The notes under the pieces: generated by a model | What the model saw: only the letters and a program-made list of their open reading frames with translations | Told to the model about the DNA's origin: nothing | Databases searched by the model: none | In this document: positions 42,234-62,433 of the stretch, one piece after another | Layout of the letters: the number at the start of each line of letters is the position of its first letter | Numbering within the stretch: position 1 is the stretch's first letter | Made by a program: the position numbers and the translations under genes | Source: Trichosphaerium sp. ATCC 40318 | Lineage: Eukaryota; Protista; Tubulinea | Reading direction: 5' to 3' | Assembly: GCA_038496445.1 (NCBI GenBank) | Contig: JALMLS010000197.1 | Span: 62,001-126,000 of the forward strand | DNA length: 64,000 nucleotides

Positions 42234-43013
42234 TCAATAGTTTTTGTTGCCAAATCTTGGCCTGCTGCGACGTCTGCTTTTTGAATCGTAGCGTTTGTTC
42301 CATATCGCGCATTGTTCTTGAGTTGCACTGAGTAATTGTAGCATAAACTTGGAGTCTACTAATACTCCAAGATGAAACTCTTCTCCCTCGCGGAAGAAAA
42401 ATGGAGCTCCAAAGTTTCCAAGCGCTACATGTGCGTCAACGAACTCCTCTAGCAGAACCAAGTTCTCATATAGAACCTTAACTGTAACGTTGCATCTAAA
42501 CAAAGCAACATTTCCAATATTTAACATTGTGGAAAAATCCGACACCATGAAACCTTTTTGCACAACAAGTCTGGCAACTGATAGTTGACGACTCGCGTTT
42601 AAATAACACCCTTGCTTATAGCTCGTTTGAAACTTGCCAGAATCTCTGCGACATACTAGACAACAAATCAGCGACTGCGCATCATACAAAATAAAAAACG
42701 TGCCGTTGCCAAACTGTCCTGGTGGTACGAAGCATTTTAAGGCAAATGTTGAACTCCTTCTATATTTTTGGACGCTCCATGATAACCAGCACTCGTCGCT
42801 GTTTTCCGCCCGGTTAAACAGTTTACGTACCATTCCCAGGACAATTTCTGGTGGTACTTGGGATATGGCAGTAATTTTACATTCAAAACCTAAAAATACA
42901 ATTTTTAGAAAAGCACGTTTTCGAGTTCGAATGTGATGTGCGTACCGACATTCCAAACAAATACGGGTCGCTCTTTCCGATCTGCTACATACAAAAGGTG
43001 AAGCTAAACACAA
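42234..43013 (-). CDS. Hypothetical protein (long stop-free frame, start codon unclear)
   Basis: 259 codons without a stop in AT-rich DNA; no recognisable motif; first in-frame ATG only ~60 codons in. Confidence 0.4.
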   Translation of the reverse strand: MCLASPFVCSRSERATRICLECRYAHHIRTRKRAFLKIVFLGFECKITAISQVPPEIVLGMVRKLFNRAENSDECWLSWSVQKYRRSSTFALKCFVPPGQFGNGTFFILYDAQSLICCLVCRRDSGKFQTSYKQGCYLNASRQLSVARLVVQKGFMVSDFSTMLNIGNVALFRCNVTVKVLYENLVLLEEFVDAHVALGNFGAPFFFREGEEFHLGVLVDSKFMLQLLSATQEQCAIWNKRYDSKSRRRSRPRFGNKNY

Positions 43014-43103
43014 AGAAAAATAAACCTAACAAAGAAGGCAATAAACGATTTTTTTAATGTGCTATGATTAGTTTCTACAGGATTTGGTTATTTTTTTCTC
43101 TTT

Positions 43104-46100
43104 CTACCATTTCTTGAAGCTTAAGGTAATAGAACCTGATACTCTATCTTCCTTCTTACGTCCACTTCTACCACGTAATTTAAATTCAACATTCTTGTTA
43201 TCTTTAAAATCAGGATACTCTTTCAAATCAATAGTGAAAACACCCATAAAGTCATCCTACAAGAAAAACATTAGACTCGAAAAAAATGGTTCTCAAGCTT
43301 TTTCTTACCTTAGCAAGTGAGTCATGATCCCAACACTCAATAGTAATAATACTATCTGTTGCATGACTACCTTCTAAATCAACATCAACATGTTCGTTAT
43401 CCCACACTGGGTTGAGTGTCTTTTTCTTTACTAAGTAACAGTATTAGTTTGTTTATCTCTTGACAAGCAATGTACCTTTAGTCTTTGCAACACGCTTCCT
43501 AAAGTCAGAGCGACCAAGAGCTTGGTTCAAAGATACCTTAAGATAAGGATCAGAGAATCCATTAGAGTCCTTTGCCACAAGGTTTTTGCCACTAATGTTT
43601 TCAAAGGTAACTTGAGCAGGCCAACCAATTTGATCCTAATTTTGAGTACCAACGTCAGGAACAAGCTGTCAAAGAATACATTGAGCATTTGATAATATAA
43701 CATACCCTTGGTCTAATTTTAGACGAATACAATTCTATGAATTGTGGGATGTAGGCAGAATCCCACAAGAATGTCATTCTATCCTTCTGATCAGCTTTTT
43801 TAGGGAATTTGACCTGCGTTCAATAAATAAGCATTGATCATGATTCACAAGTAACCGTACGCGTTGTGGTAATTTAGCAGGCATAATGTAATCTTTGAGC
43901 AGTTGGAATGACCACTAAAAAGATATTTAGAATCACGTGAATGAAAAATAAAGGTCGATGATCCACAAACAAAAACAACGCAAAAAAAAACTTGCCAAAT
44001 CTGTCCGTTTGTACAATTTACCAACTACAAGTGCACCCATTTTAGCCTCAGACTTTGTGATCTTAATATTAGCACTATATAGAATCATAAGAGACGATGA
44101 ATGCAATAAATCAAGAGCGTACGTGACATAAGATTCATATTCTTTTGAATCATCTTTTCTTGATAGTATTTTAAAAGTTATAGACTCAAAGTTACCAAAA
44201 CGTTGTCTTTGACCTTCGTGATCACGATAGTCAGTTGTATGAATAAGAAAGTAAAGCTCTTTAATCTTATCACTTATACGAGCAGTAGCAAGGTTAAAAT
44301 AATCTGTATTAGTTGCCTTGGTTGACCAACCACCCTCTAACATAAAGTAAAAAAAATGTAAAAAAAATATAACTTACTTTGAGAAGAAGTTGACATTGTG
44401 ATTGATTTATCACGAGACATTTGAGTGTGAACGTCAACATCTGAGCATAGAACATCTCTTAATTTACCATGAACATTCACTCCAATCACTGACGCTTTGA
44501 GTGAAACATTCTTATCGGCACCTACAAGCAAAATAAGAAACTGGACAAAGTTAACACCAAGTCACTCTTGTTCTTACCTGAGGTTTTTTTCCAATGAAAC
44601 GAAAATGCAAGAGCTTCAGCACGCTTAGTAGATAACTCACGCAACTCTCCTTTGTTACGAAGCTCAACCATAACATCTGGTTGAGATGTAACTGGTTTTG
44701 AAGCAGCTTTAGAAAGAGTGCGAAGACTACTTGCAAGTTGAAGACGATTTGTCAAGCGGACAGCAAACATTGCTCCACGAAGCTTTTTACGTGCTTGGAA
44801 TCTCTTCAATTCCTCCTTGACACCCTCTGGAAATTCATCAGCAGATGGTACGTCAACATTAGCGACCCAAGGGTGTTTAAGCGCCATATCAATGTCGAAA
44901 CGGCTAAATCGTAACTATTAGTACATACTACCAGGTTTGGTGTAAAGAAATGTACTTTTCTGGGTCTCTTTGCATCATTTTCCAGACAAGGTCTTTAGCC
45001 TCGTCTGAGATACTGTACCAACATTGTCCTAGCCAATTGAAGGCACCTCTTTCAATGTTGCGCATCATCTCTTCCTAGTAGCTGCGTTAGACATGTGTCT
45101 AACGAAAAGCATTGAGATGAAGTACCTGGTCAGGCTTTTGGAATGGGTGAACACCAGAAAGCAAAATGTATAGAACAACACCGACAGCCCAAACATCAAC
45201 TGGACGACCATATCCTGGCTCACCAGGTATCTTATGCCTTTGCCTGACAAGCTCAGGTGCCATATAAGGGATAGTACCAACAACAAGGCTGAACCCGTCA
45301 TCCTAAGAGCCTTATAAATGCTAGCACGGAGACAATACCTTTCAGAAGGACTTTATCGTACAGTTTCTTGGCATTTACGAGAGAAACCGAAATCTGCTAG
45401 TTTGACTACAGCATCTGCTGTTTTATCCGCTAGAAGCAGATTTTCTGGCTAAAAACGAAACGTGTTACAATGACATTTTAAACAAGCGAAAAAACGCCTG
45501 AAAGGCGTTTAATTATTATCAATCGCTTACCTTAATATCCAAATGCGCAATGCCTTGCGCATGCAAGTGTTTGACGCCCAAAAGCACCTGTTTTATACAA
45601 CGACTTGCTTCGCGCTCAGAGTATCTGTGTAGTTCGATAACTCGCTTAGTTAAGGGTATTATAACACAGTGTCTGCTTTTTCACGTAGAAATAAAAAAAA
45701 AGAACAATGTTGTTCTGCCTTGCTTGAAGTACAAAAAAATAAGGATACTCCTATCAAACAGCTCTCCACCTGTCACGTATTCCAAAACAACGTAAAAGTT
45801 GGTAGAATCAACAAAGATCTCTTGAAAGTTGACGATATTTGGGTGATGTAGCATAGCTGATACTTCTATTTCTTGTGCCATGTTTTCCATAGTTGTTTTC
45901 CGTCTGTTGACTACTTTTACAGCCACATTCTAAAAATGATCGTTAGTATCTGATCGTTCATCGAGTACGCCTAACTCCCTGTTTTTGGGGAGTTTAGTGC
46001 GCTCTTTAGTATTATCGTGATAGTACGCACTGCTCCATCGCTCTTTGATGTCCCCTTGCGTACGACAGAAAATGCGCCCTTCCCTAGCGTTTCATGAAGC

Positions 46101-46274
46101 TAATGTCGTTATTTTGGATCCAGTGCAAACCCAAATTTGTTTTTAGACGTTAGATGTAGTACTACGCACGTCATAACAGTCTATGATCTCTTTGTCATTT
46201 AATTTTGGAAATTTGTATCCTTGTGGTAACGCCACAGGTTTTTGGCTAGTAATCAACGTAAAGGCTTGCTCCAT
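43104..46274 (-). CDS. CAMK-group Ser/Thr kinase with CaM-binding segment, TerD-like domain and C-terminal C2 domain
   Basis: [54 protein letters not shown] (regulatory helix). C2 motifs [29 protein letters not shown]...DDFMG. Confidence 0.92.
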
Positions 46275-46397
46275 TGCACTAAACCACAAATCTGGCTACG
46301 TGAGTTTTTGACTACTTTTTGACTCGAAGTTGTTTCGCAGCTATTTTCCCGTTTTCACTTTGTCATTTACCCATAGGCCCACACGCCATCTGGTTAA

Positions 46398-48641
46398 ATG
46401 TTGTCGCGGTTATACAGGTACTCGTACTAAATGCAAGAGAATGGCCTAATCTAACAGTGTAATAGGGCTACAAGTGTCCGTACAGCTGTTAGAGCCTCAC
46501 GCGGTGTTCAGCAGCGACGATCCTACTGTGTGAATATATTGTACGCGCAACGGCCAGCAATTGTAACTAAATAGATGTAGTGGCGGTCAAGAACAAAAAC
46601 CTTTGGAAGCAGTCAAGCCAAAGGCAGAATTGGTATTGAAACGCGTAGATGAGATCGCAAAGCTAGCTGCAAAGCATTTGTATGCGAATGAGTTTAAAGA
46701 AGCAGCCCAGTATTACGAAAGTGCTTTGGACTTAACAACTTCGGTTTCAGCGGTATGTAGAGCGTAACGGCATCATTCTTGATAGTATTGACGCTCTTTT
46801 ATTTCTTTGCCTTCAAAATTGCTTGTTTGAGCTATGTGCCATGTATTTCGCTGACGTGTTTCATTCTAGGATGAATTATTAGTAGTTCGCGCTAAAGTAA
46901 ACTTGGCATACGCTTATCACAACATGGACAAAATAAGTGAAGCTACAGAGTTGTATAAGAATATTGATACCCTAGAAAAACTACTTGGCGCAGAAGACCA
47001 AGAAGTTAATATTGCAAAGATAAATTATGCTGAAATACTAGCCAAAGAAAAGAAGTACGTACTCAAGAAGGCGTGATATGTTGCTTCGGAAGGCTTTTTT
47101 TGTTATAAGTCGCTTTGAATGCTGATTTTTTTTTTTCAAGGATGGAAGAGGCTGAGAGATACGGTAGAGAAGCTGTAGGTGTACTTGAACGTCATAGACG
47201 TACTGATGAATTTGTTGCTGCCGCTTTGAGTAATTTATCTGGATACCTTGGCGTACAAGTACGTTTTTTTTTTTTGGTTCTTCTCAGTTGCAAAGATTGG
47301 GTTATTGATTTCGTCTTTTTTCTAGAAAAAATACAAAGAGTCCTTGAAATACGCAAGTAAAGCCCTACGCATGACTGAAAAGCATCTTGGACGTAACAAT
47401 TCTGTAACAAAGACAGTATTTAGTAACTACTATTCTCTGTTAAAGCTTGCTGGAGACGAGAAGGGCTTAGCAGGTACAACAATATAACCAATATCAATTT
47501 TTGAAAAATTAAAATCTTGTCGTTCTTCTACTTCGTTTTTTATTTCATTTTACTCACTTTGGTTTTAGATTTGGAAGCAGATTGGAGCACAGAAACAGGT
47601 GAACCAGATCGCGCAGCAGATGAGCTTCTTGAAAAGACACAAAACGGCGAAATTGAAATTGATGATACAGAAACGCCAAGTGAGCGTGGGAAGACCCCTA
47701 AAAAGGATGAAAAAGCTGATACAGAAGCTAAAGAAGATGGAGAGGGTAAAGAAGACAAAGCAGATGCAAAAGAGTCAAAAGAAGAATCAAAGGAAGAAAG
47801 TACTGAGGTTGCAAAAGCTGATGAAGATAAAGAGTCTACTCCTGAAGAAACAAAGGAAGGTGATGTGCCACAAACAAAGGAAGACGCAAATGTATCAAAA
47901 GACGCTGAGAGACTTGGAAAGTACGTGTTGTTTGTGTTTTTTTTTTGGATTTGTTGTTGCAACAAAGTTGTCCGTTTACTGATTGTTTTTTCTTATTAGG
48001 TTTGAAGACATTTACAGAAAAACTCATAAATCTCAACCTAAAGGATTTGTAAAAGATCCTGATTTTGCCAAGAAGGAGTTAAGTGAGTTTATGGACTTAT
48101 GGTCTGAAAGAGGTATGGTTCTGTTACATTTTGAGGCGAAACAACAATCGCTTTTTTTTGTTTCCATTTTTGATGTTGCTTAATTGTAAGGCGTTGACTT
48201 AACTTTTTTGTTTTAGATCCAAAAATCGATTTATATGATCCAGCTTACGCTAAGGTTCTTCAGCAAGAAACTGACGCCATTGAGTACCACGAAAAACTTG
48301 CTAAAGAGCGTATAAAGACTGTAAGGAGAAAGGTTGATGAAAATGTCTTGTCACAAGGTTTATCTGAGGAAGAGAAGAGAGATTACGCTAAAAAAGCAGA
48401 AATATACTTTAATCAGATATCTGCTTCAGGATTTACTAAAGATCAATTGTCGTCTATGATAGATGAGACTGTTTTCGATACAGACCAACTTCTTAAGTTT
48501 GGAAGGAGTCAATTTGGAGCTACACAAGAAGAACAAGAAGCTACACTTGATAGAGAGACAGATGAAGCTTTTGAACAACTTGGAAAACAAGTTGTTAATA
48601 CTATTACAGAAGAAGAAGTAAACAATGAATCTCATGAATAA
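46398..48641 (+). CDS. TPR-repeat protein with predicted mitochondrial presequence and acidic insert
   Basis: MLSRLYRATSVRTAVRASRGVQQRRSYC (Arg/Ser-rich, no acidic residues). TPR helices AKVNLAYAYHNMDKISEATELY and AAALSNLSGYL. Glu/Lys-rich region. Confidence 0.7.
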
Positions 48642-60560: not shown

Positions 60561-62433
60561 TTATCTCTTGGATAGTTTGATATGAGCTATCTTTGGCATT
60601 TCCCACATTTCCTTTGACTAACAAAACATGTGAATAACTTAGAGAAGTAAAAAAAAAACTGCATCTTGTACCTCGTAACAATAAGATATGTATAAATAAA
60701 AATCATCACCATCTTGATAAGAAAGCTCTGGATGAATTGCCATATCTGAAATGCTTGACACATCAAACTCTACGGTGGCAGGTTTGTCGTAGTCTCCCTA
60801 GGTTAAAATTAGTGTTACAGAAATAGAATATGAAGTGACTTGCCCAAGGTTTGTCAGCAGCGTATATGTTTATTTGTGAACCGTGGCTTGTAAGGAAAAC
60901 AAATTTCTTCAAGAAAGGAATGTACTTTACATCAAAATCACCAGAAACACCTAAAGTTGATTGAGATCTCAAAACCATTTTGACAAAAACAAAATCGTCT
61001 TCAAAAAGAATACTTTGAACTACAGCAGGTGTGTTTGTAATTAATCTAGGCTGGTATACAGGCGTCTCGTTGTCACCTGAAGAATGATGTAAATTATAAA
61101 TACGAGGTTCTTGAAGGAAGGTACCATTCCAAAACAAGTATGTTGGATATGGAGTTATAATAGAGTCTGAATCACACTTTGCAATTATTATATCATGACT
61201 ACCGTCAGCGTTTTTCCTTTTAACAAATTGATACACCTAAGTTCAATAGACATTAATAAGTTTAACATGAACTTGGATGTGTACTGCATTATCATAATAA
61301 ACAGAGACAGATGGTTGAGGCATATCAAACTTAAAACAATGATTAGTATCAACTATCAATCACGTGAAAGTATACTTACAGTAGTGTTGTCTGCGTATAT
61401 ACGAGTAAAGGAAGCTTCAGCATAAGAAGTATTGCTTAATATACCAGCACCATATGCGTAATGATGAGAATCACTTTGACAAAGTTCATTAGCGAAAATT
61501 CATTGTCCTTTAACATACTTGAGTCGTTTAGGATCTAGTTCTAGCACTTCCCAGTACAGAAAAGACATTCCCCATGCGTGAACCTAAACAGCTATCTTAA
61601 TCTCAAAGAGTTATCATGTAAGCGTACACCACCGGAAGGAGAAATGACTGATAAGTCAGGGTCTATATTAGGTGATGGGATTACTGAGGCTGGATCTTGA
61701 AGGACGTTGTTCGCCCCTAGTAGTAACATTAATGTACGAAGTCAGTAATTATTGAGGGTACTATGAGATGAGTAGAACGCCACTGTGCTATTTGGATGTT
61801 TTTCTACGAACATGACTGATGATAGAAGTCGAGTGGATAGTTTTAACGACTTGTTTAAACACTTAGGATATGTGCCTTCATTACATAAAATAGTGTCTCC
61901 AAAAGTCCACATTGAGACGTTAGCGTTAATTAATGTAACTACAATTCATCAAAATTGGAAGTGAAAAATTCAAAAAATGAAACCTTGTCCTCCTCGTTGG
62001 CTTATAACTCTACTTTGGTTGGTAAGATCCGACAGCCTGTTGAGTTCATTAAAACAGTGTTTAGGTTACGATATTATGATAGTGACAAGTAAGCGCAAAA
62101 ACGTGCCATGGCAATTGCACCTTGACAATCTCAAACTCGTAGTGTTCTGCTATCCACGGCTTATCCCATGGTACCTAAAAGGTGTTCGTTCGAACATAGT
62201 TTATAAAACAACGTACTGCAATTGTTAGAACGAGTGCTACGACAACCACAACAATGAGGATATGTACAATGAATAATCCTATACATTGACCAACAGGCAA
62301 CTTCTAACGAAAAGTCACAAGTTAAGAAATAGCACGTGATGAACATTTGAAAAAAAATAAAACAGCAAACCTGTCCATTTTTCGCGCACCTTTGGCTTTG
62401 GGATGTCGTCCTTTGGTTCTTCTTCGTTTTCAT
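60561..62433 (-). CDS. Membrane-anchored DUF4185-like beta-propeller (putative glycoside hydrolase)
   Basis: N-terminal TM helix, MWTFGDT, VISPSG, YLFWNG, DVKYIPFLKKFVFL, IYAADKPWG, MAIHPEL...LYISY. Confidence 0.6.

Follow-up and report, generated by a model that had tools for sequence, protein, structure and literature searches.

The 64,000-nucleotide stretch analysed here (the window; positions 62,001 to 126,000 of contig JALMLS010000197.1 from Trichosphaerium sp. ATCC 40318, G+C content about 37%) carries on its minus strand an expressed gene for a protein of 735 amino acids. This protein is predicted to combine a protein kinase domain of the CAMK group, a CaMKII-like regulatory helix, a divergent TerD-like domain, a conserved linker and a C2 domain in one chain. 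The gene and its features are listed in Table 1.

Table 1. Gene model and predicted features of the kinase-TerD-C2 gene (window positions)
Feature	Positions	Strand	Residues	Remarks
Whole coding region	46274..43104	minus	735 aa	16 exons; ATG 46274, stop 43104-43106
Exons 1-4	46274-46170, 46099-46031, 45929-45749, 45640-45531	minus
Exons 5-8	45448-45362, 45302-45126, 45074-44956, 44903-44578	minus
Exons 9-12	44521-44378, 44336-44123, 44074-43996, 43914-43861	minus
Exons 13-16	43813-43706, 43635-43476, 43430-43309, 43256-43104	minus
48-nt intron	44075-44122	minus		in-frame, stop-free; joint 44074/44123 in X1 and X4 contigs
81-nt GC-AG intron	43915-43995	minus		within the TerD-like domain; joint 43914/43996 in X1, X2 and X4 contigs; ends read CT..GC on the plus strand
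Protein kinase domain, CAMK group (predicted)	44864..46175	minus	34-296	Pfam Pkinase on exons 3, 4, 5 and 6
CaMKII-like autoinhibitory/calmodulin-binding-type segment (predicted)	44738..44821	minus	311-338	exon 8 matches in PDB
Divergent TerD-family domain (predicted)	43888..44638	minus	372-546 (envelope 361-553)	end of exon 8 and exons 9-12
Conserved linker, TerD-like domain to C2	43618..43887	minus	547-597	about 34% identical to L001 (tblastn)
C2 domain (predicted)	43107..43617	minus	598-735	Pfam C2 on exons 14 and 15

One spliced gene and its relative in a second organism

The exon model was derived from three-frame translation and inspection of GT/AG sites, and contigs of four public runs were then aligned to positions 43000-46400. 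One open frame runs through all 16 exons, the introns are 41-108 nt long and there is no intergenic gap. Intron-free contigs from three of these runs (X1, X2 and X4, belonging to three studies) match the window with an identity of at least 95%, mostly at least 99%, and their joints coincide with all 15 introns. As every predicted intron is absent from these contigs, they are derived from spliced RNA. A single X1 contig of 2248 nt extends from 43058, in the 3' untranslated region (UTR), to approximately 46268 and covers the kinase, the middle domain and the C2 domain. Together with the confirmation of all introns, this contig establishes one mRNA. Overlapping contigs from X4 and X2 also cover all domains and end at 46287 and 46284. 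The locus is one expressed gene with a single spliced transcript, and a one-transcript check that had been set beforehand, based on contigs of public runs, thus found kinase to C2 on one contig.

The initial annotation had described a CaMK-type kinase fused to a TerD-like and to a C2 domain. The peptides that it quoted are encoded on the minus strand where it had placed them, and its TerD-like stretch (approximately 43880-44680) was correctly located. An odd junction in its spliced protein (KRTDL followed by WSF) is real and uses the GC-AG intron. As to the spliced protein as a whole, one gene and its set of domains stand, while the length does not: the 48-nt intron had been read through as 16 residues, and the protein has 735 rather than 751 residues.

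A relative of the gene was encountered upon an exhaustive search of 1.84 billion representatives with the largest exon of the middle domain. The sole match, the fragment P0001 (79 aa, E 2.9e-10, 48% identity), is located on a Logan contig of 4668 bp (L001); neither the window protein itself nor a full-length protein was present among these representatives. When the gene model was compared to this contig by tblastn, an orthologue became apparent, with 45-55% identity in most segments. The order of domains is the same (kinase, regulatory helix, middle domain, C2). The two genes share the codon positions and phases of the introns between exons 8/9, 9/10, 10/11 and 11/12. The orthologue has an intron that matches the 48-nt intron in codon position, and its counterpart of the GC-AG intron has a GT donor and not GC. 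Conservation of the kinase-TerD-C2 architecture extends to a second organism that is clearly distinct. In the C2 region of this contig (L001:2005-2590), there is an apparent extra intron after the SDPY-type loop when compared to the window gene.

It is extremely improbable that two genes (one for the kinase, the other for the TerD-like and C2 domains) or an assembly artefact have been taken for one. The only argument for this is the prior that odd fusions can be mis-joins, together with the fact that continuity rests on contigs and not on single reads. The uninterrupted frame with its short introns speaks against it, as do the intron-free X1 contig spanning all domains, the overlapping contigs from other studies and the same domain order in another organism, on a genomic contig of independent origin. 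The two-gene reading is in practice ruled out by the intron-free contig that runs from kinase to C2.

Some further observations concern the transcript contigs. In X2, one joint is at 44072/44123 with one extra G, compared to 44074/44123, and there are A>G differences at 43173, 44726, 44729 and 45413. These are probably strain or allele variants. The contigs from X2 and X4 stop at 10-13 nt upstream of the ATG, after which adapter-like letters follow; this suggests a very short 5' UTR. The spliced contigs for this gene are nearly identical in X1, X2 and X4, runs that are filed under three organism names in three studies. Relabelling may account for this, as may closely related strains or mixed cultures.

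Kinase, regulatory helix and C2 domain

When Pfam was run exon by exon, the Pkinase model was matched on four exons (Table 1). The best PDB sequence matches of the kinase exons are phosphorylase kinase gamma, CaMKII, CASK, DCLK1, CDPKs and CIPK/SnRK2. The characteristic motifs are found in order: the G-loop GKGAFS (residues 41-46), VAVK (60-63), the alpha-C Glu, HLDIKPEN (151-158), DFG (174-176) and APE (199-201). The catalytic Lys, Glu, Asp and Asn as well as DFG and APE are all present. The catalytic set departs from the norm only in that Leu replaces the Arg of HRD (HLD, residues 151-153), which makes this a non-RD kinase, as had been noticed initially; the orthologue on L001 also has HLD. 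Apart from HLD, the motif set is predicted to be catalytically complete. A pseudokinase was considered and ruled out, given the complete catalytic motifs other than HLD.

The segment that follows the kinase is encoded by the first half of exon 8 and matches the CaMKII regulatory segment (5ig1, E 2.2e-6; beta, gamma, alpha and delta isoforms, E 1.6e-4 to 7e-4), with a weak match to the CaMKII calmodulin-binding peptide 1cdm_B (E 0.78). We assign it as a putative CaMKII-like regulatory helix. The initial assignment as a CaMK-type kinase with a calmodulin-binding-type helix is thus borne out at the level of homology, given the Pfam Pkinase model, the PDB matches of the CAMK group and the CaMKII segment. 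CaMKII and CaMKI also have a CAMK-group kinase followed by an autoinhibitory/calmodulin-binding-type helix, but the window kinase has HLD where they have HRD.

The C2 domain, which had also been recognized initially, scores 25.0 and 25.4 bits on its two exons with the Pfam model (cut-off 22). Loop 1 (residues 613-622) is identical to that of synaptotagmin-3 C2A across 12 residues. Loop 3 (residues 678-687) reads D-x-D-x5-D, and five Asp ligands are kept across loops 1 and 3. We take the loop 3 pattern to be like that of synaptotagmin-1. By its ligand residues, the domain is predicted to be a C2 domain of the Ca2+-binding type. The linker between the TerD-like domain and C2 yielded only a sub-threshold match when its exon was compared to Pfam (PQ-loop, E 0.11).

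A divergent TerD-like domain and its Ca2+ ligand positions

The assignment of the middle domain is based on profiles. A profile search with TerD returned enterobacterial TerD at 71-94% identity and one TerA-like protein (29%); paralogues from annotated plasmids were used instead. The resulting set comprises 15 bacterial domains with 20-69% identity to TerD, taken from the ter operon of E. coli Sakai (TerZ, TerA, TerD, TerE), a Pseudomonas plasmid, a Bacillus replicon and Klebsiella TerX. The profile hidden Markov model (HMM) built from this set matches the joined middle domain with 32.7 bits (P 3.4e-12 for a single comparison) over HMM positions 12-172 of 190, while 4002 versions with shuffled or reversed sequence gave at most 9.4 bits. 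With the full protein of 735 residues, the HMM has a single match, at residues 373-546. The middle domain of the orthologue on L001 scores 20.1 bits with the same HMM. In a comparison of profiles by hhalign, the two-sequence amoeba profile matches the 15-sequence TerD profile over 146 columns (Prob 91.4%, P 8.9e-7). Its score of 46.2 is about 13 standard deviations (SD) above that of 200 column shuffles (mean 13.3, SD 2.5, maximum 21.5).

Even single exons carry the signal. When tested separately, exons 9, 10 and 11 matched TerD positions 37-56 (P 0.0084), 89-135 (P 0.0035) and 150-164 (P 0.0035), and thus in colinear order. A profile of exon 10 matched an alignment of five TerD sequences in the correct register with E 0.45, and the match improved only with the more diverse set. 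The identity of the middle domain to TerD is about 19%. Among the 32 TerD columns with the highest conservation, 12 are kept, mostly in the core (W29, L41, G52, K53, F107, F121, L160, W167 and F169 among them). We conclude from these profile comparisons that the middle domain is predicted to be a true but divergent TerD homologue, in agreement with the initial assignment.

A number of results weigh against this. Pfam found neither TerD nor any other family above threshold on single middle exons, probably because four introns cut the domain into pieces of 18-71 residues. Single-sequence searches with the largest middle exon did not retrieve TerD from the word index, PDB or the 1.84 billion representatives: the word-index protein search returned nothing at all, the PDB sequence search one chance match (E 0.67). 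With the same exon, a feature search of the ESM Atlas resulted only in phage-like noise with low recognition. A scan of JGI metagenomes with a two-sequence exon profile did not reveal relatives. A structure model predicted for a 113-residue piece (exon 10, the retained intron and exon 11) consists mostly of strands, and with a predicted local distance difference test (pLDDT) value of 46 it is unusable; a beta-sandwich fold may be assumed for the middle domain by homology only. It has thus to be considered whether the middle region is an unrelated beta-rich spacer that resembles TerD by chance or convergence. The blank Pfam result on the middle exons, the failure of phmmer with the largest exon to find TerD among the representatives and in PDB, the noise from the ESM Atlas and the low identity would fit such a spacer. 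We regard it as very unlikely, given that the HMM and hhalign scores are far above the highest of their controls, that one colinear alignment covers nearly the whole domain with the separate exon matches in correct order, and that the domain from L001 also scores with the TerD HMM. The failure of the exon-wise Pfam run has a general aspect: as this gene shows, exon-by-exon scans miss domains that are split by many short introns.

If the middle domain is a TerD homologue, its Ca2+ ligands can be compared. TerD from K. pneumoniae binds two Ca2+ ions, with positions 40, 41, 42, 78, 79 and 89 attributed to Ca1 and positions 29, 82, 84 and 88 to Ca2, as far as given in PMC8779313, which cites Pan et al. 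2011. At the positions of Ca1, the HMM alignment places S398, L399, K400, S437, S438 and D451 of the window protein, and at those of Ca2 it places W387, G441, K446 and T450; within the loop 77-89 of TerD, the alignment is uncertain. Taking the ligands as attributed there, replacements are seen at five of the six side-chain ligands, with Ser or Thr at four positions and Lys at Asp42. Across the 15 bacterial domains, no column other than that of Asp42 is invariant. The acidic ligands had been called degenerate in the initial annotation, and for this ligand set they are. Because of the Lys at Asp42 and the Ser or Thr at four other ligands, the TerD-like module most likely no longer binds Ca2+ canonically, as judged from the aligned residues. 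Some bacterial paralogues in the 15-domain set (N-terminal domains of TerA) are also devoid of the Ca2+ ligands and of the same loop. A core that is kept and ligands that are lost would fit a TerD paralogue that is structural or binds otherwise.

The orthologue on L001 is a counterexample in part. Its Ca1 positions read N, L, E, D, G and N, its Ca2 positions F, G, V and D, and for the same set of ligands it keeps acidic residues at three of six positions (Glu 42, Asp 78, Asp 88). This counts against a complete loss, and residual metal binding may occur in this kinase-TerD-C2 subfamily.

It might be argued that the TerD-like domain has kept a sensor function, in that it binds Ca2+, some other metal or a small ligand, for example cAMP as has been reported for CABP1 from Dictyostelium, directly gates the adjacent regulatory helix and thereby provides the kinase with a third input besides calmodulin and C2. 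The domain directly follows the autoinhibitory helix, and it is well conserved between the window protein and L001, which come from organisms with 45-55% identity overall. The acidic residues kept in L001, within the ligand set considered, point in the same direction, as does the bacterial neighbourhood of a TerD-family gene with genes for a PP2C phosphatase and a kinase (see below). TerD homologues have also been linked to Ca2+ and cAMP binding (PMC8123226). In the window protein, however, Lys takes the place of the invariant Asp42, and non-acidic residues stand at five of the six side-chain ligand positions attributed to TerD. We consider a sensor of this kind unlikely. A non-canonical role of the TerD-like module in docking, or as a spacer, is most likely.

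Proposed mechanism and relation to known systems

We thus consider it probable that the gene codes for one expressed Ser/Thr kinase of 735 residues, with a CAMK-type kinase domain, a CaMKII-like helix, a divergent TerD domain, a linker and a C2 domain, which functions as follows. A rise in Ca2+ would act at two points, the regulatory helix and the C2 domain. Ca2+/calmodulin would bind to the helix and free the kinase. Because its catalytic loop has HLD and not HRD, the kinase is not expected to require phosphorylation of the activation loop and would be active without it. As all five Asp ligands are kept, the C2 domain is expected to bind acidic phospholipids and would bring the active kinase to the membrane, comparable to EhC2PK at phagocytic cups. 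The TerD-like module, located between the regulatory helix and C2, would be a spacer, a docking module or a binder of another ligand. It weighs against this scheme that the binding of calmodulin and of lipids as well as the activity of the kinase are predictions from the sequence.

Conventional protein kinase C (PKC) is an AGC kinase with C1 and C2 domains N-terminal to the kinase and with a pseudosubstrate, which is driven to the membrane by Ca2+. It also has a Ca2+-type C2 domain and a Ser/Thr kinase in one chain, but PKC lacks a calmodulin-binding helix and TerD. A closer case is EhC2PK from Entamoeba histolytica, which starts phagocytosis and whose C2 domain, at nascent phagocytic cups, binds with Ca2+ to membranes containing phosphatidylserine (PMC4192601). 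Coming from an amoebozoan and having one C2 domain of the Ca2+ type, this kinase is the nearest functional analogy to the window protein, although the two were likened by description only. The order of domains is different: in the EhC2PK type, an N-terminal C2 domain precedes the kinase, while C2 is C-terminal in the window protein. We assume that EhC2PK has its C2 domain at the N-terminus and that it has neither a TerD-like module nor a CaMKII-type helix.

TerD domains are widespread in bacteria, where they are associated with stress and phage resistance, and their rare eukaryotic copies are thought to have been transferred horizontally. With bacterial TerD/TerE/TerZ/TerA (PF02342) and with CABP1 from Dictyostelium (capA/B), the window domain shares a putative homology at the profile level, over about 160 of 190 positions, with core residues kept. 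Those proteins are standalone or tandem domains, whereas the window domain is embedded in a kinase and is split by four introns. The similarity of Dictyostelium CABP1 to TerD/TerE has been noted (PMC8123226), and dictyostelid TerD (capA/B) has been listed as a candidate for horizontal transfer (PMC3188802).

On plasmid pKP36_vir (L006:4443-10594), a TerD-family gene adjoins VWA genes and genes for a TerY-C metal-binding protein, a PP2C phosphatase and a kinase. By analogy, a link between TerD and phosphorylation may thus have a bacterial precedent in the form of separate genes. The plasmid kinase belongs to another family, while in the window gene TerD and a eukaryotic CAMK are covalently fused. 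It is tempting to speculate that this fusion is a eukaryotic "Rosetta stone" for a link between TerD and Ser/Thr phosphorylation, a bacterial TerD having been taken up by an amoeba and inserted between the autoinhibitory helix and the membrane-binding C2 domain of a CaMK, where it would still sense and would gate the kinase. We judge this to be doubtful. If a sensing TerD module really gates the kinase, the protein would stand for a new class of kinases that sense stress; candidates for what is sensed are a metal, a nucleotide-like ligand and the membrane state. If the TerD-like module is only a spacer, the protein would be a modest addition to the known domain architectures of kinases. In either case, TerD is set here within a well-understood signalling frame, a CaM-type kinase with a C2 domain, and its contribution would be measurable via kinase activity, membrane recruitment and ligand binding.

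In the literature on TerD with kinase and C2 domains, in eukaryotes and in Amoebozoa, no such protein was found to be described. Based on this literature and on the one relative among 1.84 billion representatives, kinase-TerD-C2 appears to be a new domain architecture made of known parts, and not a new kind of system.

Directly downstream of the kinase gene, there is an open reading frame of 259 codons on the minus strand (42234-43013) with odd composition and a blank Pfam result, which is possibly not a real gene. On the other side, a divergently oriented multi-exon gene starts near 46603 on the plus strand (46603-47490) and has weak, sub-threshold Pfam matches to TPR_2 and TPR_3.

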